Source of the DNA: Lenisia limosa | Lineage: Eukaryota; Protista; Breviatea | Length of the DNA stretch: 35,647 nucleotides | Assembly: GCA_001655205.1 (NCBI GenBank) | Contig: LPNZ01011251.1 | Span: 1 to 35,647, forward strand | Direction: 5' to 3' | Part shown: positions 1 to 32,600 of the stretch, in pieces | How the letters are laid out: every line of letters begins with the position of its first letter | How positions within the stretch are numbered: the stretch's first letter is position 1 | Position numbers and translations under genes: made by a program | The notes under the pieces: model-generated | Seen by the model: the letters and a program-made list of their open reading frames with translations, nothing else | Database searches by the model: none | What the model was told of the DNA's origin: nothing

Positions 1-3000
1 ATGATTTTGGGTATCTGACTAAAGCCGTCAATAAGCGTCACACCCACCTGGTCACCCAGGAACTCGGCAAGTCGCTTGGCAGTGGTGATAGATGTGGATT
101 TCTGATCACCATAAGAGGCGAGTGTGTTGGACATGTTGCGCTCTTCACTGGAACGTCATCGCAAATTCGAAGTAAAAAATAAGGAAATGAGGACGACCAA
201 TACATACACGAGTAAATGGAACACCTCATCATCCTCAAGCTCTTCACCCTTTGAGAACAAATGGTCAAGCCAGTGATTGGCCACTTTGCCAACCTGTGTA
301 GTTACAACGAGGATAATTAAGAAACTTAAAACTGTGGGTTATTATAAATACTCCATGGTGAAATAGAGCAACTATCTCCTCTTCCCACGGCGGCGTATAC
401 TTCCTCTAAAGTCTTGCCTTCAAGGAAGGCTCCAAACACCTAAGGTCGTAATCGTTGAATAACAGGATTAAGGAGCAAGTGGAGCATGTGCCTACCTGCC
501 CTTGGAAAATTTTGATCAAACGCAGCTCGCCTCTTCTCTTGATTTCAAATCCCTGAATGGTGACACTTGAAACATGATTACTAATCAACACAAAGCAAAA
601 GGGCACTCAATAAACTGATACATCATTACGAACCTTTAGCTCTGCCAGAGTGTTGTCGGGGTTGAAGACTGCGTATCTACGGGGGTCAATGGAAACACAT
701 TCATTTACGAAGTCGGTTATTCATATACATCCACCAAGCTAGCTTTAGATGAGCTAACCTTTTCTTGAGTTTCTTTCCTTCCTCTAAGGCAGCAGGCAGG
801 ATCATGGCTTTGTAGGGACCATCAACTTCAAATTCTATGGAGTTTTCACTGAAGAGTTAAGCATGTTAGAACCCTGTGATTGCTGTCAGCATCCCTATCC
901 TCCTACGAGTGTTTATCGTAGCTTCGAAGGGGCAACTTGTCCTTATCAAGAGTCTGGTATTGGTGGTTTGTGAATTCTGAAATGTGAACAAAGACTCTCA
1001 GCAAAAAATAGAAAAAAACAAGAGAGGGGGGGGGGGGGGANNNNNNNNNNNNNNNNNNNNNNNNNNNNNNNNNNNNNNNNNNNNNNNNNNNNNTATTCAA
1101 CAAAATAGTTTCAAGTGAATGTTTTTTCGTGAAAATCTTCCTTAATCGTTTTCTTTCAATTGCAATTGCCACAACAAATTTCCCAAAAATAAAGCAATAC
1201 TCTGAGAAATAGTTCCTTATTAGAATATGAAATATCATAGACTTAACCTGAGCCACATCACTTGGTTTCAAAATCAAAAAGAGCCCATCATTTGCCCACT
1301 TTCGTAGACTTCTTTGTTCAAAACAACACAGGGGTAGGACATTCGGTAAACGGGCTTGTTTGGGTTTCTGAACAAAATTAATATAAATCCATGATTGTGG
1401 ATGAAGGATGAAGCCACCCCCCCCCCCCNNNNNNNNNNNNNNNNNNNAACGCACCAAACACCGTCAGTATCCAGCTCTAATGGAGCTCCAATCTGCCTCA
1501 CAAGGTTGGTGGCTCCCATGATAATTGAAGCTCCGGTAGCACAAACTGAAGGTCAGTTTCAAGTAAAGAAGTATCAGCTTTGATTCATTGCTCACAATTC
1601 CAAGATCTTTGGTTATATACCACTCACCAATGCCAGCCATCGTCATTGAGTACCATCTCGAGCCCTTTCGCATCACATATCCGTAAAAGGAGTTGAGGAT
1701 ACACTTGTGGGCCAACTGCAAGGACTCGTACAGGATACACATGTCTTCGGCTTCCTGGATCAGATCTACATCGCCTTCCTTGAATGTAAGGGAATATCAT
1801 ATTTCATGCTATGCACAGCAAAAAAAATACTTTATCAAAGAAAAACACTAATTTCTTACCTTTAAACGTTCCTCTTGCTTCTTTTTCCACTTCTTCAAGT
1901 CACGCTTATATTTGTATCTGAAGAGGTTTGAACAACAAATACTTTCATAACATCCTTTCAAAAACATGGAGACGGGGGGCCTAATCGTTTGGATAGTACT
2001 ATATGTAATACATACAAACCTTCTATCTCTGAAGCTCAGAACAGTGTCAACATAGAAGGAGTTTTCCCTCTGACAGACAATGTCCGTTTTTGTCAAGACC
2101 TCCTTCTTTTTGATCATCTTATAGGCTTTCCTAGGAAATAAGAATCTGAGAGAATACATGGAGAAAGGAGGATTAAAGTTTGAAAACTGTCTAGGCTGTT
2201 ATATAGTTCCCAAAATGACATACTAAAAACATATCAATCATATCATATGATATGATATGATATGTTGACAAAGTAAGAAAAGTAATTAATTACTGTGCAT
2301 GTATGTACGCAGAGAATCCTCACCTGCAGTATTCCTTCATTCTAGTCGAAATCTCAATGAACTGCCTTTCCTTATCCAATTCATCAAAGGACACCTTTTT
2401 CTGCTCTCCATCCTTGTCTACAGTTGTAAAACCTCCATCAAGTTGAAATAGACTGTTATAATATTGAGTATTTCTGGCGCAACAAAGCAGAAAGCAAGAA
2501 ACAACGCACATTTGTTTTTGACAACGAACTTCTCCGTTTTGAGCTGGTTCTTGACCAGGCGGTACTCAGCCTTGGATGCGGGGTAGAACTCGCCCCTCCA
2601 ATGCCATTCCATTGGGCGCTTACTGTGGGGGGGGGGGGNNNNNNNNNNNNNNNNNNNNNNNNNNNNNNNNNNNNNNNNNNNNNNNNNNNNNNNNNNNNNN
2701 NNNNNNNNNNNNNNNNNNNNNNNNNNNNNNNNNNNNNNNNNNNNNNNNNNAATACGAAATAAAAGAGAAAGAAATAGCATCCAACCAGTCATTCTTTGGG
2801 TCATTGTAGTCGCAGCGAGAACAGGTCTTCTCTTCAACAATGGCTGAGGGTTGCAGTCTGGGGTGTTAATAGACGGTGAATCTAAAACTGAATAGAACTC
2901 CATCACTTTATTTCGTGAAATGGTTTGCAATTAAAATGGAGCGTATTAAAAAAAAAAAACCCCAAGCCTTCCAGCTATTATATCACCAAGACCCAAGACA

Positions 3001-6000
3001 CCCAACCTATTGGTGAGGATGATGTTGGGGTACATAGCTGACACATCAAGATGGTAGATCATTGGGTTCTCTTTTCTCATTGGATTGTCCCTGGAAGGTC
3101 AAATCAAAGCACTGAAGACGACCACTTCAATTTTATGTCTATTACCCATGTAAGAGTTGGGTAATGACAATTAAAGGCCTCAAGTACCGTTGATCCTCAA
3201 GGCGTCCAATGATATCGTTTCTGATCTCCTCCAAATTGGAAATGTCTGAAAAGTAAATGAAATAAAAAAAACAAGAAAACCTTGATATATTCTTCAGTTA
3301 TCCTACCTTCGATTTTGAGATTAGCTTCATGGACTAATCCGAACTTGAGAGTTTCATCAATAGTGTCTAAGTCGGTCAATAATCATAATTAAAAATACTG
3401 CATCAAATGAACAGATAACAAACCAATGAGCCTTTGGTGCGCAGTGGGGTCCAACTTGAAGCGATGGGGAATATCGGATCTGTATACTCCTGACTCAATC
3501 GCCTAAAATTAAGAATAATAAGAAGAAGATAACACTTGACAACAAGATGCATACTTCCACATGTCCTCCAATGTAGGTCTCGGTCTCAAGTAAATGATCT
3601 TTGTAGAACCGGTTGAAGTCGGTTTGCTAAACAATCAAAAGGAACGGTTTTCTTGTGAAAACGAACAGACCAGCAACTCCCCCCCCCCCCTACTTGCTTA
3701 TTGGGGTAGATAATGCCAGCAACGGTGGCTTGTACACAGAGAAGAGCCTGGGGTAATAAGCATGAATCAAGCTCAAAAATGTTTCCTAAGACTCACATAA
3801 CCAACGGTTGTACATACCTCACAAAGAGAGCCGGTACCCTTTCTCAGGACCTCGTGGGGGTTGTAGGGGATGATATTGCAGAGGGAGAAGATGAAAGGGT
3901 GGACGTATTTCATGTAGAGGTAATACGTTGCCACAGCGTCTGANNNNNNNNNNNNNNNNNNNNNNNNNNNNNNNNNNNNNNNNNNNNNNNNNNNNNNNNN
4001 NNNNNNNNNNNNNNNNNNNNNNNNNNNNNNNNNNNNNNNNNNNNNNNNNNNNNNNAAAAAAGTTGCCTCAGTAGAAACAAGAAATAATACTCTTCTAACA
4101 GTTCAAAAATGAACGAGGAATTCAGAGGAAATGACAATGTAAAATGGTGACCAATCATACACAAGGGTCCTCTGCTGCAAGCGGGGTCATATCCTCAGGG
4201 TCAAGCTCAATAGGGTCGTAGCCAAGCTTAGCCTTCGTAACAGCTTTCAGACCTGATGATGGTGAAACTTGACAAGAAGATCTGTTGTTTCTTATGAAAA
4301 TTTGAAATTTGAATTTTGAGTTTCACTATAATCCTTCGGTCTTGATGGGAGCAAAGGTAAGGCTTAGTGATTGCTTTATTTCCTATTCACACCTTGAGAT
4401 CCAACAGGAAGGTAAGAGTCGCGCTTCACCCATCGGAAACAATCCAAATGCATCGCCATGTGACTCTCATACTCATCACTGTTGTTCTGAAAGGGTAAGT
4501 ACAATAAGGCTACGCTTGAAGATGGTGTTATAGAAATCTTGGCTAACCTTTTCAAAGCCTATTTCTTCATACATACTCATCCCGTGGATGGCAGCACGAC
4601 GTTCAACAAAAGGCCAATCAAAAGAGTCTCCATTATACGTAACAAACACAATGGGCTTCTCCTCCTAAGACTGTTAAAATCAAACAATATACAGGAAGCC
4701 TTCCCAAACCCCCTCACAATGACATGGTCAAAGAACCTTTTGATCGTTGATGCCTCGTTCTCTTCATTGAAAATAATGAAAGGCCCAGGGAATTCAGGCT
4801 GAAAAGTAAAACAAAAATGGAATCTAAGAGCTGATTTGTGTGTGAATAAATTGATCCTTCCTCTTACCTTCGGGGTGTACTCAAAATCTTCAACATCATC
4901 AGAACAAATCTGAAGTATAAATTTTTAAACTAGCAAATTTGGGGCTGCAACAAAAAAACGCTTATGAACTACCCTTTGCAAACCTCTCGGTTGACGATGA
5001 GGAAGCCCTGCCTGTCAATCATATACGAAATCATCATGATCATGTCAGACTCCGCATCCGGAAACTTCAGTGGTTGCTTCGACGTCTCAATATCGTAGGC
5101 GAGAACCTGGGAGGAGGGGGGAGTAAATGTGGGTAAAACGAAGTAAAACGAAGGAAGTAAAATTGGAAAATTGATGAAACAAAGAAAAAGGAGACGGGGG
5201 AGAGTAAAACTGTAATAATATAAAGGATAAAGTTGACTTCTGCAGTTTTGCCCATACCTTTGGCTTCTCACGATTTGCGATATCTCTCTTAACAACAACG
5301 CTGTTACCTCCTGACTGGAATACATCGTACCAAAGCCCCACACGAATATCTGAAGTAATAAGGAGAAGAAATTTATCCAGAGTACTCGTATTCTTCACAT
5401 ACCGTTGTCAATAGACACGCGAGAGTAGTAGGGCATGTCATATTCACGTATGTCAGTAACATTGTCCAAAGGGTCTGCCAGAACTTTTTCTTGCCTGGAC
5501 GTAAGTTCAATGAAACTAGAAAGAGAATGGATGATACTGTATAAGAGACCAGTCATTGAAATAAAAAAAAACACATTAATGGTCAATGTAGAAGGGTGAT
5601 GGTGTAATTACTGAGTAGCAACAGATGAAGTCAGATGAAGAATAACATACTCAGAAACGGTTTTATACGCTTCCATTGCAGTGTTTCGCTCCTGGAAGGC
5701 CTTCGCTCTCGGCATCAGCTCCTTGCGTACAGCATATAACTCTACATTCATCAGGCAAAACTTACACACAAAAAGAGAAAAGAAACTGTAACCGTATAAA
5801 CACATATGATGGAGTCATAATATATCAAAAAAAAACGGGCTCACTTAGCAAACTTCACCCTGAAAGCTCCTTCTCATAAAACCATTTATTTCAGCACCCT
5901 CAAACCTGCGGTAGTACTAAAGTTGATCCGCACATACTTGGCATCACGTCCACTCAGATGGTTGTCCTGCGTCCATCAGCGGTAACAGGGTCATCACAAA

Positions 6001-7507
6001 TTTTAATTATGATACCTTTGGCAATAATCTGATACCCCATAAAACCCAAATGAAGACAAATATGAAAAAAGTGAGGAAAATGAGCCCATGATGGGGGGGG
6101 GGGGNNNNNNNNNNNNNNNNNNNNNNNNNNNNNNNNNNNNNNNNNNNNNNNNNNNNNNNNNNNNNNNNNNNNNNNNNNNNNNNNNNNNNNNNNNNNNNNN
6201 NNNNNNNNNNNNNNNNNNNNNNNNNNNNNNNNNNNNNNNNNNNNNNNNNNNNNNNNNNNNNNNNNNNNNNNNNNNNNNNNNNNNNNNNNNNNNNNNNNNN
6301 NNNNNNNNNNTTGTTAAAAAACAATCCAATCATAACGCATAGGGCCGTCATACGACCCCCGAGGGGATCAAAGAATGGACAGAGCGCGGACCAGACCAGA
6401 CTGCAGAAAAGAATTTCTACACTAAACCATACATACAGCAAACATTGAAATCGAAACAACAACACAAAAAACAAAACAAAGGGGCACAAGTCAAAAGTTA
6501 CTTCAAAAAATATTAAGCTGAGGGGAATAATAGCACTAGGGCTTTGAAAAAGCTCCCCTAGTTAATCTTTGAACCAAGAAATTGTGACAGACTTGGCGCA
6601 TATTGGGGGGAGGGGTGACAAACCATATCAAGATCCACTTTGTCAACAATTTCAGCCGAAGTGATTGAGTCGTAATTGCGTCTCAAGGCATTCTCAACCT
6701 ATGGAATCAATAACAGTTGAATACAAAATTAACACTGCTTGGCACCCACCTCCTCCTCAGATCCTTCATTGCACCCAACATAGAAATAAGGCTCGTACTT
6801 GAACTGGGCTTTGAATCGGTTTCCATCCTAAAAGTTATTCTGGGGATGGGATGCACAGAACAACCAAAGAACAAAACACTCCGAAAAGAATGAATTATAC
6901 TAAAGAAGTTTGGTGAGAGTAAATGTGAAAGACCCACACACTGCCTGTAGGAAATAGAGGTCCACAGCTTGTTTGTCTTTGGCTTCTTCCTCAGCGTCAG
7001 CTTTAATCAGAGTCTAAGTTATGTTAATTATTGAACCTTGTACACTCATAATTAAAAATCTCATTACCACATAATTCTCCTCCACATACTTCATTCATGT
7101 TGACCAGCCAGCCTAGTCGCGTTTCATCCGTGTCATGGTGCTCAAAGCCGTACCTAACACAATAAATTACAAAATTTTTAATCTCATAATTTCCATCTAA
7201 ACTGCTAAATCTTAATCAAATTATCTTTTGCGGGTTTTTTTTTTTTTTTTTTTTTTNNNNNNNNNNNNNNNNNNNNNNNNNNNNNNNNNNNNNNNNNNNN
7301 NNNNNNNNAGTTCAAGTTGCTTATCGACACGCCGTCTTTCTTCCGCCTCCTTTTCCTTGATCTCAACAAAACTAATGTCTCCAACTCCTAGAAAGGTGAG
7401 AAGGGGAGCTACTTGAGAAAGCACTAGAAAAAGGCGCCTGAATTACCTAGAACTCCTCCTGCCGATCCAGTCTTCCCTGCAGTGTTTCTCCACACTTTGG
7501 GCGGCAT
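1..7507 (-). CDS. POLE: DNA polymerase epsilon catalytic subunit A, multi-exon, N-terminal part only (3' end lies beyond window start)
   Basis: ATG at 7507 ([12 protein letters not shown]). Spliced exons give [35 protein letters not shown], Exo[19 protein letters not shown], Exo[35 protein letters not shown], motif [22 protein letters not shown], Cys[19 protein letters not shown], motif [20 protein letters not shown], motif [26 protein letters not shown]. All are hallmark Pol2/POLE motifs. Some exon parts fall in N gaps. Confidence 0.98.
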
Positions 7508-19706: not shown

Positions 19707-20532
19707 AGGTGAGCCCCCTCTAATTGCTGCTAATAACTCTCTACTACCCCTAAGAACATTCTCTCACCGAAAGATGCCATCCTTCTGTTTCGATTGACCC
19801 TTGGTGACTGACTGACTTTTTAGTTCTGTGATGCAGAAAAGGTCTTTTCTGTTGTATAACTGTTTTGTGTTTTGTGTTGATGACAAATATGCCGTTTCAA
19901 AAAAAAAATACAGACAAGGGGGGGGGGGTGAATATATCCTGAATATCTTTAGCATTCGTGTAGCAAGGATGGCAGTGAGGCCCTTGGATAAACAGGGGAG
20001 CAGGGAAATTGGTCAGTGGTCTTTTAATATATCACACGTAGTCATGTTTCTCATTTCTACACATAGCCGGCCTCAAGGGCTGGTTGAGGGCTGGGGCCAA
20101 CGGGGCTCAAGGGACAACTTCCCGGTACGTACCGGGCATAATCCTCCGCTAAGCTCTTGGTCTTACTTTTGACCGAAATGGCGTGGAGTTTGCGCGAGGT
20201 GGCGTACCAGAGAAGGGACAACTAATCACAAACTGTTTGCAAACTTTTGGTGTCCACATTTTCTTCCGTGGCACCGACGCTGTGGGGTGGTGGCTGTGTT
20301 TTACTGAGTGGGGTGCTTTGTACTATGTGCTGCTGCGGCCGCGGGATCGGACGTTCAGAGGCCCACCCCGCGGGGTCATGGAAATTATATCGGTTAAAAC
20401 TGGTAACAATTTCCAAAATTTCCGGTTAAAACCAAAAAACCTGCCTTTGAAATAAGGTCCACAAGAGCAGCGCACATAACATAGCTAGCAGGTACGTGAA
20501 AGAATATGACCAACCCTCCTCGAATACGACAA

Positions 20533-23500
20533 ATGAGAACTTTTTACATTTCGTATGCTCTGCTTTCGATTCTTCTTCTCTTTGGAGTCGGCCCAATATC
20601 TGCAAAAAATGTAGATGATTTGACATTGGAGCAGTTCTTCCATATAGTGGCCAAAAGAGTGGGTTGGTTTGTTGGAGGGCACCCACCTTTCCATCTTTTA
20701 TTAACGTATAAACCTTATATAAACTCTTTCTTTATTAATTTATGTTTGTTTACCTCTAAATATTTTTCGAGAAGAAGAGAAGAACAGGCCAATTGCCCCG
20801 AAGACAATTGCTGACCTCGGATGCTGTTGATTAATTCCGACAGGGTGATTGGGAGTACTCCAAGCTCGAGCCTCTGGTTGCCAAGCTGCATTCAAATTGG
20901 TTCGATGATGTGCCTTCTCTCAGAGCGATTGACACTGCCATGTGGTCCGATATGGGGTGGGTGAAGTAAGATATTGCATACTGCTTCGCAAAGCTATATT
21001 GGCCTTTGAATACACTTACTCCTTTAAGATTTCCGGGGAGAGTTGTTCTTGTTATTGAAGCCCTTCTCAAGGACAATGACCCATGCGGTATGCTCGTGGA
21101 AATATAANNNNNNNNNNACGTGAGTATAACATGAATAGTATATGTATATGTGCTCTTTGCTGCACCAGTTGGCCGATATATGTTTCAACTCATGTTTCAA
21201 GGAAAGGACTTTTGTAAGCATGGTGGTGAGTCTAATTCAGATTGTACTTTGTGCACCAATTGCTCAATGGGATGGAATGGTGGGAGGGATGCTGTGCTAT
21301 TTGCTGGCAAAGTCATTTGTTGAACACAACACAATTTATAGGGCGGTTCTAATCACTTAACAGGAACACACTGTGACAAGTGGGTTGGTGGTGAAACCGA
21401 TGCTCTTCTCAAGGGCCTCCAGGTTATCATTGACAGCTCTATTGCTCATCAGAAAAACATTTCTCATGTAAATGTAGGTGGATGTAACTGAACTGAAGCA
21501 GAAAAATCAATATATTTCATCAAAAGGAACCACTTTCTGAAAGCCTAAAATTAGACACATTTATCAGATATTTTGCTTTATCTCACAGCCGCTACCTGGG
21601 CAAATCGGGGTTGGTTGCGATCTCACAACAGGTAAGCGGTGAGATATTGCACATATCATATGACATTGGCTGATTTATTATCTTACAGGACACCTTCTTC
21701 TCCCGGTTGTTGAGCTGACTTATAACAATGCCAATCGTACCTGGACTAATTTGTTCGGTGACACTTGGCGTATCCCAGACCAGTCAACGTTCGAACCCCT
21801 TCCCACTGGTGTGGATCTTTGAAGATTGTTTTTGATTGTCTGAGTGTTCCAATAATGACTTCATTATTTGTAGGCTTCGACATTCCAGAACAGACAGAGC
21901 AGATCTTTGAAACCATTTCAGACTATGGTAAGAAATTTGATCCGGTTAATAATGCTGGTTTCTATTTTGATGAAATATCCCAATTTATCCATTTACACTC
22001 CTAAGTACACGAAACATTCAGTACAAGTGAAGACAAGGAGAGTCACGGTGGTATCTACACATCAATGGCAGATATTCAGTCTATCAATAAAGTTGGTTCT
22101 GGAATCTTATTGTTGAATTTATGAAAACGGCAAATTACTTTTTCCTCTGCTGTTGTTGGTGGTTTTATGTCAAATAGGAGTTCTTTACAGCCGATCAAGG
22201 AATGTCTGTAATTCATGAGGGCTACCCAGTCTACAAACTGACCCTTCCTGTTGACCCGGCGACGAAGGTGGGATGATGCTGATAATATATATAGTACATA
22301 TGCTCGTGAGCCAAACCCCCGTCATTTTGGGATATCCCGTCACTTTTGAATACTGGAGAAATAAACTTGTTGTTAACAGAAGTTAATGTGTAATTTAAGC
22401 AACAATTGCCAAGTAAACCTTTACAGACAATAACAGAATTGTATTAATTGACTAAAATGAACGTCTTTTCTTTTGGGGTTTCTTTTTCTCCTTTTGTTTG
22501 TACATAAGCTTAGTAATGATGTTGGTGGTAGGAGACCTCCTTTGCGCTTTTTCGGCTAAATTAGTCTCTCAAAACCTCTAAATATGAGACAGTTGAATTG
22601 GAAATTCTGAGTCAATTGTTATTCAGAACATATAATAAGATGGAATACAATGAGAAACAAATTGAGACCTCATACAGCAAATATTTTGAAGAGAACCGTT
22701 AATGTCCCAAATATTCCTTCATATATACTCTTCAAACTTTTACTCATCATGTTTCAGCGGACCAAATATGCCAACTTTGTAACATATATCCGAGGACCTA
22801 GATGTCATTTGTTATTCAAAAAAAGGTGGCAAACAACTTATTTGGATGTCCTTCTTTGTGATTCTGTTAAAAAAATGCAATAGAACAATAAACTTGGGTA
22901 GCTTAAAAAGAGTCAAAAAACTCCGTGAAAAGGGGGTGAACTGAACTTCCGAAACTTCCGAAGAATTTTTTTAAAAAAAATTATTTTGATTCTTTTACTT
23001 TCTGCTGGTTCCATTCATTCAAAAGTGATGCGATATCCCAAAAATGACGGTGTTTTGTCGCACAAGCATATTATTGTTTTCTGAAAATTGGTTACCAAAT
23101 TTAGGACCGCAAATACAATTTGGACCGTTTTGCCAGCCAGGCTATCGACTTCCTTCCTCCAAGTTACACCACTGATCAAGACAAAGCTCTTTACCAGCGT
23201 TTTATTAAATACTTCGGGTTAGCTAAACTGTGTGACATCTGTTATCCTTTCACAGTGTTTCGCAGTAAATAGAGAATAGTATCACATCACGACTTGCTCT
23301 ACTGACTAGTTAGAACATCCTTCACTTGGAAGGCCAGAAATGGTGGAATTGTGGAAATGATTTCCGTTTTTGAACTGGACTTACTTTACGATGCAATTAT
23401 TCACAAATCTGGAAAGGTAGGAAGGTATTAAGGATTTTAATGACCGTTGTCACCATCAGGTGTTCACCAAAGATCAAATTCTGCAACAAGTAGTTTTAGA

Positions 23501-25303
23501 CTTCAATAAGCAGCGAGGAAAAGGTTGGCAAGAGCATTCAGGCTGTGACAACATATCATTAATATTTGTTAGGACCAACAAGTGGCTTAGATGATGATTA
23601 CGTAAAACACCGTACTTCAGCTTCATTCAACTGTATCGGAGGGGATGCGACAATCAAATGTAGCGCTGCCACGATCAATGACTGGATGAAGACGATTGTC
23701 AAGCTTCCAACAGTCCTGGACTTCTTTGTTGCCGATGTGTCTCAACTGATTTCCGACCCTGTAAGGAATTTAGCAATTATATAATGTACATCCTTGTTCC
23801 AAGTGCTCCATGTTCATCCATTTCAGGTAAAGCGTTCCAATATTCAACAAGCTATTCAAAGCTATGTACACGAAAAGGTGAGAAAGCTGAGATGTATCCG
23901 ATTTGACTTGCCCCCAGGCTATGAAGTGGGACAATATTAATCACTGTCCGTCGTGTGTCTGGGGTAGCTGCACCCCTCCTGCAAAGTTTGTGCTTATGAA
24001 AACCGTAGCAATTCCTTTTTTGATGACTTACTTAAATTCATTAGCACTTGTCAGTGCAGCTCTGCAACAATTCTCGGTCGTCATTGTAACAGATGTTCCG
24101 CTGGATGGTCTGGAACCAAATGCCAAACCCCTGTATGCTGGCCCAACATCTATGTTGTGCTAACACTACATGACTTCACAACGATATTACCTGTTTAGGT
24201 TTGCAATCCAGCATGTGTCTCCGGTAGCTGTGCTGCTCCTAACAAATGCAAATGCCCAGAACGCCATACAGGAGCCCGGTGAGTGATATAAATGCCCTTG
24301 ACAGCCTTATTCCTGCCTTTTTCGGCTTGACTATTCAGCTGTGAAAGCTGCATCAATGGGTGGAAAACATTCCCAGCATGTGATACCGCTATTTGCAAAA
24401 ATTGTGACTCTGATGTAGGTTGAGAATTAGAATAATCGATATGTGTATTTTTCGCCTATTAAAGTTAAAATATCTTGTAAAATACTAAAATATGATTCTG
24501 TTTGTTCACCGACTTAGCATGGGAAGTGTGTTGCTCCTGAAAAGTGCGAATGTTTGATGAAATTCAGTGGAAAAGACTGTCGAGTGCCACCCGTAAAATG
24601 CCCTCATGTGAGATCTTAGAACTTGTTCTGCGTTCTTGATTGAATAAGACATGAAACGAGTACTTTTCTGCAGCCTTATATCCTTAGTGTTATGGACGTG
24701 GAAAAGCTTGTCCCTTCCCAAATACCGGCTGTGCGGAGTCTGACAAAGTGAAATGCCCAACTTGTAAGCATGCTGTTTCTTCATAAATGCCCCTTAATTG
24801 AGAAATTCTCATTTATCAGGCTAATTCCTTATTATTTAGGCTCAGGTGATGGCAGTGTTCCAGCAAACCTTCAAAGGTGCTTCAAATGGTAAATGTGAAT
24901 GTTATTACCATCATATTTACTCCCATAATGTGTGTTTTTGAGTTTACCGAAGCAGTCACGGTCATGGATCGCAATGCAAGGATGAGCTGGCTGGCAGTTG
25001 TTCCCCATCCAAACGAATCAAATGCGCAGGGTGTAACAAAACAGGAACCATTCCTCTGAACAGTGCACCGTATGCTAAGCCATCTTTTGAAAATCATTGC
25101 CTCACAATTCAGATGTACAAAATGTAAAGGACGTGGTTTTGTTGACGCAAGTCGGAATTCTGACGTAGGCACAAAGATACAAGTACAGCATAGATACAAT
25201 TCTCATAATTTAGACCCTTTTGGACCATGAGGACAATTCCACCTTCAAGACTTGCCCAATGTGCAGCGGAAAAGGATTCCTTCCTCTTCCAAGTCATAAT
25301 TAG
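20533..25303 (+). CDS. Secreted MACPF/perforin-like protein: signal peptide, SAM-like domain, EGF-like module, MACPF domain, EGF-like repeats, six CxxCxGxG-type motifs
   Basis: ATG 20533, signal MRTFYISYALLSILLLFGVGPISA. MACPF N-part LPGQIGVGCDLTTGHLLLPVVELTY..WRIPDQ. Core AIDFLPPSYTTDQDKALYQRFIKYFGTSFTWKARNGG (23105-23217 joined to 23314). C-part CIGGDA..INDWMKTIVKLPTVLDFFVADVSQLI..NIQQAIQSY. EGF-like CNPACVSGSCAAPNKCKC and HGKCVAPEKCEC..FSGKDC. Tail CPHCYGRG, CPTCSGDG, CFKCHGHG, CAGCNKTG, CTKCKGRG, CPMCSGKG. TAG 25301-25303. A 10-N gap lies near 21110. Confidence 0.88.
22301..23068. mobile_element. 768-bp non-autonomous TIR element with TA flanks in MACPF intron 22268-23104
   Basis: Left tgctcgtgagccaaacccccgtcattttgggatatcccgtcacttttgaat versus reverse complement of the right end tgcttgtgcgacaaaacaccgtcatttttgggatatcgcatcacttttgaat (about 50-bp imperfect TIR). 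TA at 22299-22300 and 23069-23070. No transposase recognised inside. Confidence 0.8.
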
Positions 25304-25794
25304 ATTGTAGCTCATGTTAAGTCACGAGCTCCCTTGACGATATACTACTCTCTATTATTGTTGAAGTGGCTTCAATTCTCACTCATTATTGTATTTTGCA
25401 TTATTCTTCAAAGCAAATAGCTTCCAACAGTAATAAATATTGTGACGAACATCTTTATTATTATATAACATAAAAGAAGGCAGCAAAATCAGGTTCTCGC
25501 AGTTTTGCAGATTTTTCAACATTTTTGCCTTTCTATCTGCTATTCTATCTCTCCTACAGCGTTAAGGCCTTAAGTGTGAGCGTGGGTGGGTTGGTGGTGT
25601 ATGAGATGCACTGTGAGTGTAATATAAATTACAGAGAATAATATGAATTCACCAAATCATTTGCCTCGTAACTCGCGTGCCTTCACAGCACCTAATCATT
25701 CTCTCAGTAGCTTTTGCAGTTTAACCCCCCCCCCTCGAACTGTTGAAATGGATTAATAGTACATTCACGCCTTGATCTAATCGCAGCGTCTCAC

Positions 25795-29600: not shown

Positions 29601-32600
29601 ATAGTAATCAACTCACATGAACTCTGCGACACCCTTGATGGAAAGCGGTTCAAAAAGGCTCTCAACCAACACGTTGTCAATTGACAGTCCAAGGGGATCC
29701 ACGCTTGTTGACGCTACAAAGTCACAAAACAACACGTTTACTTGAATTAGGGCCTCACTATAGTTCAAAAAAGACCAATAATATATATCGAGTTATCGAG
29801 GATTTATCGAGAAATTCGCTTTTTTCGAACCGAAGTGAACCCCAACTAGAATCATATGAAGACACCGAAAAGAAAACTTGGTTGTATCTGACTGAAATAT
29901 TTAATCATAGATAGGGATTACTTACCGCACTATCCCATAAATTAAAACTCCTCTCTCCTTCCCTACCATTACCCCCCCCCCCNNNNNNNNNNNNNNNNNN
30001 NNNNNNNNNNNNNNNNNNNNNNNNNNNNNNNNNNNNNNNNNNNNNNNNNNNNNNNNNNNNNNNNNNNNNNNNNNNNNNNNNTCCTCATCAGTGGCAACGG
30101 GAGTGCAGTCGTGGATCACAAGAGATCTTGATCGGTCCTCTGAGCAAAAGTCGAAGGAAAGCTGGGCAAATGACAGGAAACAAGGGGGGAGGGGGGCAAA
30201 GAGGAAAAGTAAAAGAGAGGTAATTCTGGACAAATAAGAAGGATGGAGAATGGAGGAAATATGAGGGGGAACGAATGCAGAATTGAGGGTAAGAGGTAAG
30301 GNNNNNNNNNNNNNNNNNNNNNNNNNNNNNNNNNNNNNNNNNNNNNNNNNNNNNNNNNNNNNNNNNNNNNNNNNNNNNNNNNNNNNNNNNNNNNNNNNNN
30401 NNNNNNNNNNNNNNNNNNNNNNNNNNNNNNNNNNNNGCTGGCTTGAGGCTGAGAGTCAGGAGCTCCCCTTCTTGAAGACTGAGGGTACCGTCAGTGCAGT
30501 TAATTGGAAAATAAGGTTCAAATTTGAGTGAGACATATCGCAAAAGATAAATTCATCAAATCAAATATTTATTGGAGGGAGTAATGTCAACTCACATTAA
30601 AAACAAACAACAAACCCAATGCTCACAATGAGACGAGGCGGCCGATGAATTTCCCTCCTCTGTGGCAGCTCACTCCATGAAGATGCTGGCCTGAACAATC
30701 AAAAAGTGCTGGTTTTNNNNNNNNNNNNNNNNNNNNNNNNNNNNNNNNNNNNNNNNNNNNNNNNNNNNNNNNNNNNNNNNNNNNNNNNNNNNNNNNNNNN
30801 NNNNNNNNNNNNNNNNNNNNNNNNNNNNNNNNNNNNNNNNNNNNNNNNNNNNNNNNNNAAAAAGTAGACTCGAAAGTCATACGATCATATCACAAGGGGA
30901 TATTCATTCTTCATAATTTGCGTGACAGTTCAGACTTCATTTGCTACATCCTAACGTATCTATCTATGAAGGGAGAGGGGGGATTGTCCTCGTACTTTCA
31001 GTGAGAGCGGTGTAAATGTGGTGTGTCTCTGAGTGCGTCTGAGTGAACCGCGACCATCTGTGGGGGAATAACAANNNNNNNNNNNNNNNNNNNNNNNNNN
31101 NNNNNNNNNNNNNNNNNNNNNNNNNNNNNNNNNNNNNNNNNNNNNNNNNNNNNNNNNNNNNNNNNNNNNNNNNNNNNNNNNNNNNNNNNNNNNNNNNNNN
31201 NNNNNNNNNNNNNNNNNNNNNNNNNNNNNNNNNNNNNNNTGGTCAACTAATCAAAAAATTTCGGCAAAAATGAATAATTATGGATTGCAATTTCAATAAC
31301 AATCAAAATAATTGGCCTTTCTTACGTTTCAGGATTGTTAACGTCTGTAGTGAATATTCCGACAAGAGAAGAGTGCTATAAAGTCAAACGATATGACGCC
31401 TTTGAATATCAATGAGGAAAAAACAAAAATACCTCGTAAGGAAGTGAAACAGATCATATTCATAAGGTGATTTGTTTTTGACGTAGAATAGAGCTTACAT
31501 GATGAGCTTCAATTGTGTAGGAGATCTCCACTCCAGCTAAATGTGTAAAAACTGATTCAAATTCTTAAAGAGTATGAAATGTTTCTAATGCCTCACTTCA
31601 AATTTTTAATTAATATCTGCGTTGTATATCCAGTAAAACAGCCTACCAGCAGCGTGAGGGATGGTGAAAATAAGGCCGTTATTGAGTGAAGTCAAATGAA
31701 CCTCAGTGGGACCGATTCTGGGATGAGCTATTAATTTTGTAATTATTGCTCAAATATTGCGAGATATTTGGAGCAGTTGTAATATCTTTAATCAGTTTTA
31801 ATAATTCTCAACAATATTCACAATTGTAAACAATGTTAGGGGGGGGGGGGGCTTTATGNNNNNNNNNNNNNNNNNNNNNNNNNNNNNNNNNNNNNNNNNN
31901 NNNNNNNNNNNNNGATTTTGAGAATAACAAAACAAATATTTCATACACGGAGAGGGACTGCGAGTCGTTAATGTCTGTACACGTGTCACCAGAAAGGCCC
32001 ATGTCGCAGTAAACGTGCGGACCGTTACAGATTCCATTAACCAAACTAGGGGGGTAAATATGAAATGAAAAGAAAAACCCAGAATTAACTCTGTTGGCTA
32101 AACAATTGCAAAACACACAGGCAAACAAATCCCCCAGGCCAGTCGCTCCCGCGCCAAAAATTCGGCCATTGGTATTTATTTTTTTTGCAAATAAAAATTT
32201 TGGAAAAGAAAATATTACTAAAACGAGTTGCCACAGAGGTCCCCTCTTACGACAGATCACAAACTTGGTTCGTCTCTTCCTTAGAGGCAGTCATGACAGC
32301 CTTTGTGGCGGGACCGTCATTCACCATTCCCATTACGTACCTTGGTGTAAGTTGCTAGTGACTGCATGGTGTATATAGTATGGACAATTCAGCATCCAAA
32401 ACAATGGAAAAAACATACATATTATAGGTAAGGGATGGAAACAAAGTGACATTCTCAACCATTTCCCTTATCAAATCCTGAATATAGTACAAGCAAATGT
32501 GTATCTCAAATGTGCTTACCATTCTCTGTCTTGCATTACCAGATCACTAACAACAACTTGTGAGCGAGAAAAGGGTTGAAAGTCTGACAAACAATTAGTC

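Follow-up and report, generated by a model that had tools for sequence, protein, structure and literature searches.

A breviate MACPF family protein with a C-terminal tail of six DnaJ-type CxxCxGxG motifs: gene structure, relatives and possible roles

MACPF pore formers are aimed by accessory domains, and a gene of the breviate Lenisia limosa raises the question of whether a DnaJ-type cysteine module has been recruited into such a role. The gene lies on the forward strand of contig LPNZ01011251.1 (assembly GCA_001655205.1), positions 1 to 35,647 of which constitute the window, i.e., the whole stretch of 35,647 nucleotides analyzed here. A first-pass annotation had proposed that a MACPF domain and EGF-like repeats continue, through splicing, into a C-terminal tail of six CxxCxGxG motifs. 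We find that the MACPF part and the cysteine tail are one open reading frame (ORF) at the RNA level, in a gene that is real and expressed, because transcript proteins from Lenisia match it junction by junction. The domain order of the product is a signal peptide, an unassigned N-terminal domain, an EGF module, the MACPF domain, a run of EGF-like repeats and the six-motif cysteine tail. By analogy with other MACPF proteins, we favor, with a probability of roughly one half, the reading that this is a breviate-specific secreted pore former, the tail of which would act as a DnaJ-type ancillary module for targeting or assembly.

The transcript evidence stems from a phmmer scan of 1.84 billion cluster representatives with the 62 residues of exon 14 as the query. 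The scan recovered three true relatives, namely a Lenisia cluster, the protein P0009 of Pygsuia biforma and the MACPF-only EukProt protein P0008. The Lenisia cluster contains two Trinity transcript ORFs of Lenisia limosa from EukProt, P0002 (735 residues, 100% identity across exon 14) and P0010. The translations of 20 of the 25 exons are exact, ordered substrings of P0010, and the remaining five are off by one or two residues each. The mismatch of exon 2 is due solely to a different exon-2 donor in the transcripts, exons 11, 18 and 20 harbor real substitutions, and the residue at the exon 18/19 junction is R in the window and H in the transcripts. The split-codon residues are otherwise as predicted, and P0010 shows a total of five mismatches to the window product. 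Both transcript proteins have the length given by the summed exons (735 residues) and reproduce all exon junctions. The earlier claim of a single spliced chain is thus borne out by two Trinity isoforms that carry the whole ORF, neither of which ends before position 24600 or leaves the tail to a separate gene. Some details of the exon chain had to be corrected from the transcripts: the ORF may start at 20506, the ends of exons 2 and 5 are at 20956 and 21473, and the last exon begins at 25214.

With these corrections, the gene comprises 25 exons on the + strand (20506/20533-25303), chained by coordinates on the three-frame translation of 20400-25500 with the frame kept at all junctions. All 24 introns have GT-AG boundaries, and the summed exon length is 2208 nucleotides, or 735 codons plus the stop. 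The window itself was searched exon by exon, and the whole-protein analyses were performed on the public transcript proteins P0002, P0010 and P0009. The exons are given below, where C8650 denotes a second copy of the gene elsewhere in the Lenisia assembly.

20506-20658, + strand: exon 1, start codon (20506, or 20533 in the first-pass annotation) and signal peptide, residues 1-51 of P0010
20844-20956, + strand: exon 2, N-terminal domain, family unassigned; donor at 20957 in the transcript
21029-21087, + strand: exon 3, end of the N-terminal domain; exact in P0010, ends in phase 1 and is followed by the intron that holds an assembly gap
21202-21279, + strand: exon 4, first half of the N-terminal EGF-like module; exact in P0010 and 100% identical in C8650
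21364-21473, + strand: exon 5, second half of the N-terminal EGF-like module and a helical linker; end at 21473 per the transcript
21589-21631, + strand: exon 6, start of the region common to the MACPF-only relative P0008; conserved in the alignment with Pygsuia P0009 and P0008
21689-21808, + strand: exon 7, MACPF region; amino acids identical in C8650, about 60% identity to P0009
21874-21927, + strand: exon 8, MACPF region; exact in P0010
22006-22091, + strand: exon 9, MACPF region; exact in P0010
22178-22267, + strand: exon 10, MACPF region; exact in P0010, followed by the long intron 10
23105-23217, + strand: exon 11, MACPF region with the first part of the signature motif, which reads Y-x6-F-G-T-S-F-x6-G-G across exons 11 and 12
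23314-23416, + strand: exon 12, MACPF region with the remainder of the signature motif; exact in P0010
23460-23523, + strand: exon 13, MACPF region; exact in P0010
23573-23760, + strand: exon 14, the largest exon, C-terminal part of the MACPF region; the 62-residue query that found P0002, P0009 and P0008
23827-23877, + strand: exon 15, end of the MACPF region; exact in P0010
23918-23985, + strand: exon 16, post-MACPF cysteine-rich segment and onset of the EGF-like region; conserved in Pygsuia and in every paralogue
24045-24132, + strand: exon 17, EGF-like repeat; weak Pfam EGF_laminin match for the exon alone (E 0.006, under the family cut-off)
24199-24278, + strand: exon 18, EGF-like repeat; weak Pfam EGF_2 match (E 0.001, under the family cut-off)
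24339-24414, + strand: exon 19, EGF-like repeat; exact in P0010
24518-24607, + strand: exon 20, last EGF-like repeat and residues 1-3 of motif 1; EGF_2 at 24.6 bits against a cut-off of 22.1
24688-24763, + strand: exon 21, remainder of motif 1, spacer 1 with two cysteines and start of motif 2; exact in P0010 and P0002
24840-24888, + strand: exon 22, remainder of motif 2, an 8-residue spacer and start of motif 3; a split Cys codon at each end, restored on splicing
24956-25069, + strand: exon 23, remainder of motif 3, spacer 3 with two cysteines, motif 4 and an 8-residue spacer; exact in P0010
25113-25164, + strand: exon 24, motif 5 and the first part of the last spacer; exact in P0010, with a 43-nucleotide intron upstream
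25214-25303, + strand: exon 25, remainder of the last spacer, motif 6, eight further residues and stop; acceptor 25213/25214 set by the transcripts
25301-25303, + strand: stop codon at the end of exon 25

The six CxxCxGxG motifs lie where they had been annotated. Five are exact, and motif 4 has a K at the first G position:

24599-24607 and 24688-24702, + strand: motif 1, split by an intron
24754-24763 and 24840-24853, + strand: motif 2, split by an intron
24878-24888 and 24956-24968, + strand: motif 3, split by an intron
25023-25046, + strand: motif 4, K for the first Gly
25114-25137, + strand: motif 5, exact
25253-25276, + strand: motif 6, exact

In one of the three intron-cut motifs the intron falls between codons, and in the other two it interrupts a Cys codon; splicing restores all three. 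The tail comprises 129 residues with 16 cysteines, and its spacers measure 17/8/18/8/22 residues in Lenisia and 17/8/18/8/11 in Pygsuia. Hence, it displays both features by which a DnaJ-type domain is recognized, namely at least four CxxCxGxG motifs and a short-long-short spacing. The extra cysteines noted earlier are present, two each in spacers 1 and 3, and the motifs do fall into paired units, in the form of tandem 41/42-residue repeats. In Pygsuia, unit A (motif 1, spacer 1, motif 2 and spacer 2) agrees with unit B (motifs 3 and 4 with their spacers) at 22 of 42 residues, a score that no shuffle out of 2000 with fixed C and G attained; in Lenisia, the agreement is 14 of 42 residues, and the score was attained by 32 of the 2000 shuffles. 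Because units A and B repeat beyond the shuffles, the tail is best parsed as two tandem 41/42-residue units with six cysteines each, followed by a third, shorter motif pair devoid of extra cysteines.

The DnaJ_CXXCXGXG profile of Pfam (PF00684) detects the Pygsuia tail at 39.6 bits, above its cut-off of 32.7. When compared with PDB sequences, Pygsuia motifs 2-5 align motif-for-motif with the zinc-finger region of human DNAJA2 (7zhs, E 2e-5) and of yeast Ydj1 (1nlt), and Lenisia motifs 2-5 give the same alignment more weakly (7zhs, E 1.4e-3). Weak Pfam matches to Anti-TRAP are also seen on motifs 4-6. The colinearity with DnaJ suggests that motif 2 pairs with 5 and motif 3 with 4, 1+6 forming a third rung, and the repeat structure suggests 1+2, 3+4 and 5+6. 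Pfam finds no J domain and no DnaJ C-terminal domain in P0002, P0010 or P0009. Because the J domain is absent, the product is not a J-protein and is predicted not to be a co-chaperone; the most apt name for its tail is a DnaJ-like zinc-finger-type repeat module.

Upstream of the tail, the product is by profile a member of the MACPF family: Pfam MACPF (PF01823) matches P0002 at 40.5, P0010 at 40.4 and P0009 at 52.8 bits, against a cut-off of 21.5; in the Lenisia protein, the match extends over residues 302-471. The MACPF signature, Y-x6-[FY]-G-T-H-[FY] (PMC7593815), is found at residues 332-344 of P0010 along with the two glycines six residues downstream, with its His replaced by Ser, a change common to Lenisia, Pygsuia and P0008. 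Single-exon Pfam searches yielded almost nothing for the MACPF region or the tail, the pieces being too short (exon 14 against MACPF, E 0.26). The EGF-like repeats are supported both by profile and by their six-cysteine pattern, with exon 20 above the cut-off and exons 17 and 18 weaker. Pfam also detects EGF_2 on P0002, and PDB matches include EGF domains of Jagged, fibrillin and HHIP. The N-terminal domain of about 70 residues has no Pfam match, and a SAM-like label for it is unconfirmed. Hydrophobic 19-residue windows are confined to exon 1, i.e., the signal peptide. Since this sole hydrophobic segment is N-terminal, the protein is predicted to be soluble, secreted and anchorless, with tail and EGF repeats in one compartment.

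The architecture is not restricted to this locus. Pygsuia P0009 (EukProt EP00033, GCRY01000356) is 42% identical to P0010 and colinear with it from the MACPF start to the last motif. It differs from the Lenisia protein in having one EGF repeat more and a last spacer of 11 rather than 22 residues, and its stored ORF is without the N-terminal part. P0009 and slices of the individual domains match many loci in the Lenisia assembly, pointing to an expanded MACPF-EGF family. On contigs C7598, C5162 and C4387, the MACPF exons are followed by the post-MACPF cysteine segment, EGF repeats and a CxxCxGxG series. The tails of these three have about six traceable motifs each, some of them intron-split, with Pro-containing short spacers of 8-9 residues, and coding ends a few residues past the last motif. 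C4919, C2732 and C5353 hold fragments of the family; an exon similar to exon 23 occurs on C8650 and C4919, and a match to exon 23 on C156 was rejected as low-complexity. Since the layout occurs in Pygsuia and at least three further diverged Lenisia paralogues, the shared domain order of C8650, C7598, C5162, C4387 and a protein from another genus is best explained by a conserved breviate family. Its conservation in two breviate genera and in several paralogues makes it likely that the tail is functional.

The copy on C8650 (positions 1-3972) is colinear with the window gene from exon 2 to the stop, with 83-87% nucleotide identity including the introns, and has its own N gap inside exon 10. We considered and rejected the possibility that it is an allele. 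Because the similarity ends about 260 nucleotides after the stop codon, it is a recent paralogue that arose through a gene-sized duplication. As a separate observation, the isoforms P0002 and P0010 are fine-scale mosaics of window-type and C8650-type residues, with one private change in addition. The transcriptome assembly has probably merged the two near-identical paralogues, or another haplotype was sampled; the pattern suggests chimeric transcript assembly, gene conversion or another haplotype.

The C8650 copy also clarifies the one assembly gap in the span of the gene:

21108-21117, no strand: assembly gap of 10 N inside intron 3 (21088-21201), where the C8650 copy has 4 bases

The phases across intron 3 agree, with exon 3 ending in phase 1 and exon 4 bringing the two missing bases, and the C8650 copy aligns uninterrupted through the intron on both sides of the gap position. 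Because C8650 is continuous across intron 3, with four bases at the N run, the gap is intronic and small, and no coding sequence is lost.

Outside the breviates, the architecture was not recovered. The only relative with this layout in our searches, other than the copies of Lenisia itself, is the Pygsuia biforma protein, which agrees with the initial impression that the combination is uncommon; these searches gave no sign of its being already common in the databases. Word-index protein searches with the whole protein, the tail and a four-sequence profile yielded nothing beyond the query's own cluster and P0011; as they missed even P0009, they are weak evidence of absence. P0011 (ENA, 322 residues) was itself discarded as a relative: it is a prokaryote-style gene call reading through the introns of a C8650-type copy. 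In the ESM Atlas, the whole protein matched only generic MACPF clusters, at 0.77, and the tail had no usable match; a metagenome scan gave no confirmed relative. In the exon 14 scan, P0001 and P0003-P0007 match residues 13-46 of the query repeatedly, which results in misleadingly low E-values. The Pfam check of these multi-stretch matches covered P0003, P0006 and P0007. The three checked proteins were rejected as MACPF relatives, as they are rich in Ig_7 domains, with type IX secretion system (T9SS) sorting signals in two of them, and had matched via a short C-x-GG-x-C stretch; their makeup points to a bacterial origin. A literature search found no paper in which MACPF or perforin was linked to CXXCXGXG, DnaJ, Pygsuia or breviates. 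The proteins themselves are already present, unannotated, in the public transcriptome set.

Known systems offer partial parallels for either half of the protein. Perforin-1, the complement components C6-C9 and the window product are alike in being secreted (as predicted for the last) and in having the MACPF domain followed by EGF-like modules and a C-terminal accessory domain. The language-model clusters nearest to the window product are those of C8 beta and cnidarian MACPF proteins, and a comparison with PDB sequences gives a weak match to C8 alpha. However, where perforin-1 and complement have C2, TSP1 or LDLRA as accessory domains, the window product has the six-motif CxxCxGxG tail; it also differs from them in the added N-terminal domain and EGF module and in the Ser in place of the signature His, and is only distant kin (Atlas 0.77). 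By analogy, then, it may well work as perforin and the secreted complement-type MACPF proteins do, and its accessory domain is of a new kind. With the type I J-proteins (E. coli DnaJ, 1exk; Ydj1, 1nlt; DNAJA2, 7zhs; PF00684), the common feature is the CxxCxGxG motifs, and the spacing of motifs 2-5 is 8/18/8 in Lenisia versus 8/19/8 in DNAJA2. Unlike these proteins, the window product lacks a J domain, a G/F region and a C-terminal substrate-binding domain, its tail has six motifs rather than four with two extra cysteines per long spacer, and the module is predicted, from the signal peptide and EGF repeats, to reside in the secretory or extracellular space. The CxxCxGxG module also occurs outside J-proteins in the plant proteins PSA2, CYO1 and Or and in Bacillus Anti-TRAP. 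These are small or fused to a membrane anchor, and none is fused to a pore-forming domain.

Taken with these parallels, the favored reading entails the following picture. Lenisia and Pygsuia are anaerobic bacterivores. The MACPF domain would oligomerize and insert into a target membrane, most plausibly a bacterial one, of either prey or carried bacteria; because both organisms are anaerobic bacterivores, bacterial membranes are the likeliest target and reduced extracellular thiolates are conceivable. The EGF run could constitute a rigid stalk, and the tail, as the C-terminal modules of other MACPF proteins, might contribute to target binding or ring assembly. The first-pass annotation had put forward three putative roles for the tail, namely a targeting module, a redox- or zinc-sensitive switch and a delivered cargo. 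Because G-x-G is conserved after each CxxC, we predict that the DnaJ-type knuckles are retained, probably with motif pairs holding up to three zinc ions and with one disulfide in each long spacer; an alternative state of the tail would be fully disulfide-bonded.

Several points weigh against a pore former with a metal-binding tail of this kind. Some MACPF proteins form no lytic pores, Cys4 zinc sites are seldom encountered in secreted proteins, and the EGF modules immediately preceding the tail are disulfide-bonded. The Lenisia tail reaches only 23.4 (P0002, E 7.5e-5) and 22.9 bits against the DnaJ_CXXCXGXG profile, below the cut-off of 32.7, and AlphaFold2 (AF2) models of both orthologues from a four-row alignment have a mean predicted local distance difference test (pLDDT) score of 31 and 30. 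Further, the ratio of nonsynonymous to synonymous substitution rates (dN/dS) between the window gene and its C8650 paralogue is 0.05 in the N-terminal part, 0.10 in the MACPF domain, 0.39 in the EGF run and 0.55 in the tail, where (window 24688-25303 against C8650 3102-3711) exon identity is 89% and intron identity 91%. In favor of the reading, the same comparison finds no indels in the tail exons and 28 gap columns in the introns, and none of the 22 amino-acid changes in the tail falls on a Cys or a motif Gly (24 such positions, p ~0.005). A scaffold that is held while its spacers change fast fits a diversifying binding surface or weak constraint equally. The near-neutral drift of the spacers is also what one would expect if the tail were a metal-free, disulfide-only cysteine-rich stalk extending the EGF run, with no binding or catalytic role and with CxxCxGxG as the remnant of a recruited domain. 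The even cysteine count of 16 and the predicted secretion of the protein along with disulfide-requiring EGF modules are in line with such a stalk. Nevertheless, we regard it as unlikely: a disulfide scaffold would need neither of the knuckle glycines, whereas both are kept in five of the six Lenisia motifs, all six Pygsuia motifs and most paralogue motifs, and the motif number and 8-residue spacers are conserved as well.

A different possibility is that the MACPF domain is non-lytic and functions, for instance, in adhesion or signaling, with the EGF repeats and tail as interaction modules at the cell surface or in a matrix. The replacement of the signature His by Ser in all three subfamily members speaks for this, as does the long EGF run, which resembles those of the adhesion and signaling proteins Jagged and Delta. 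Yet non-lytic MACPF proteins are a minority, the family is expanded in a bacterivore, and the protein is by sequence soluble, secreted and anchorless; hence, we consider a non-lytic role quite unlikely. The tail might alternatively be redox-active, either as a thiol-disulfide oxidoreductase or as a zinc-thiolate switch that gates pore formation by oxygen or redox state, or else act on proteins of the target surface. On general grounds, extracellular thiolates could remain reduced in these anaerobic hosts. There is precedent in DnaJ-like zinc-finger-only plastid proteins, including PSA2 of the thylakoid lumen, and disulfide-isomerase activity has been reported or discussed for PSA2 and CYO1 (PMC4806229). 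No feature of the sequence distinguishes a redox-active tail from a structural zinc site, and Pfam scans reveal no thioredoxin-like or other redox partner domain, making this role improbable. One specific version of it is a long shot, namely that the six motifs form an extracellular zinc-thiolate tail that stays reduced only in the absence of oxygen and licenses MACPF assembly on the target, either by switching in response to redox state or metal or by thiol exchange. Were it true, zinc-thiolate licensing of MACPF assembly would be a form of pore-former regulation so far undescribed. Finally, the union of MACPF and tail could in principle be an artefact, with neighboring genes fused or mis-joined at the gap, as an N run does lie within the span and the earlier exon chain had been built by eye. 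This is barely credible, given that two Trinity isoforms hold the entire ORF, that the gap is intronic in an intron continuous in C8650, and that the same domain order recurs at four other loci and in another genus.

As a tractable case, the protein bears on three wider questions: by what means anaerobic protists that eat bacteria kill or manage them, whether a zinc-finger fold of chaperone origin is able to function outside the cytosol, and how domain shuffling gives rise to new pore-former specificities. In the literature searched, we found no report of a DnaJ-type cysteine module as a MACPF accessory domain, and public breviate transcriptomes contain an expanded, unannotated MACPF family.

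Elsewhere in the window, the five longest ORFs (903-1457, 2418-2930, 6007-6489, 30088-30543 and 31808-32260, all on the - strand) have no Pfam match. Within the gene, the long intron 10 harbors a further element:

22290-23090, no strand: repeat element in intron 10, outside the protein, about 775 nucleotides with terminal inverted repeats of about 55 nucleotides

This element has at least 79 matches in a genome search and is absent from the C8650 copy, the intron measuring 837 nucleotides in the window versus about 120 in C8650. It is probably a non-autonomous terminal-inverted-repeat (TIR) transposon.

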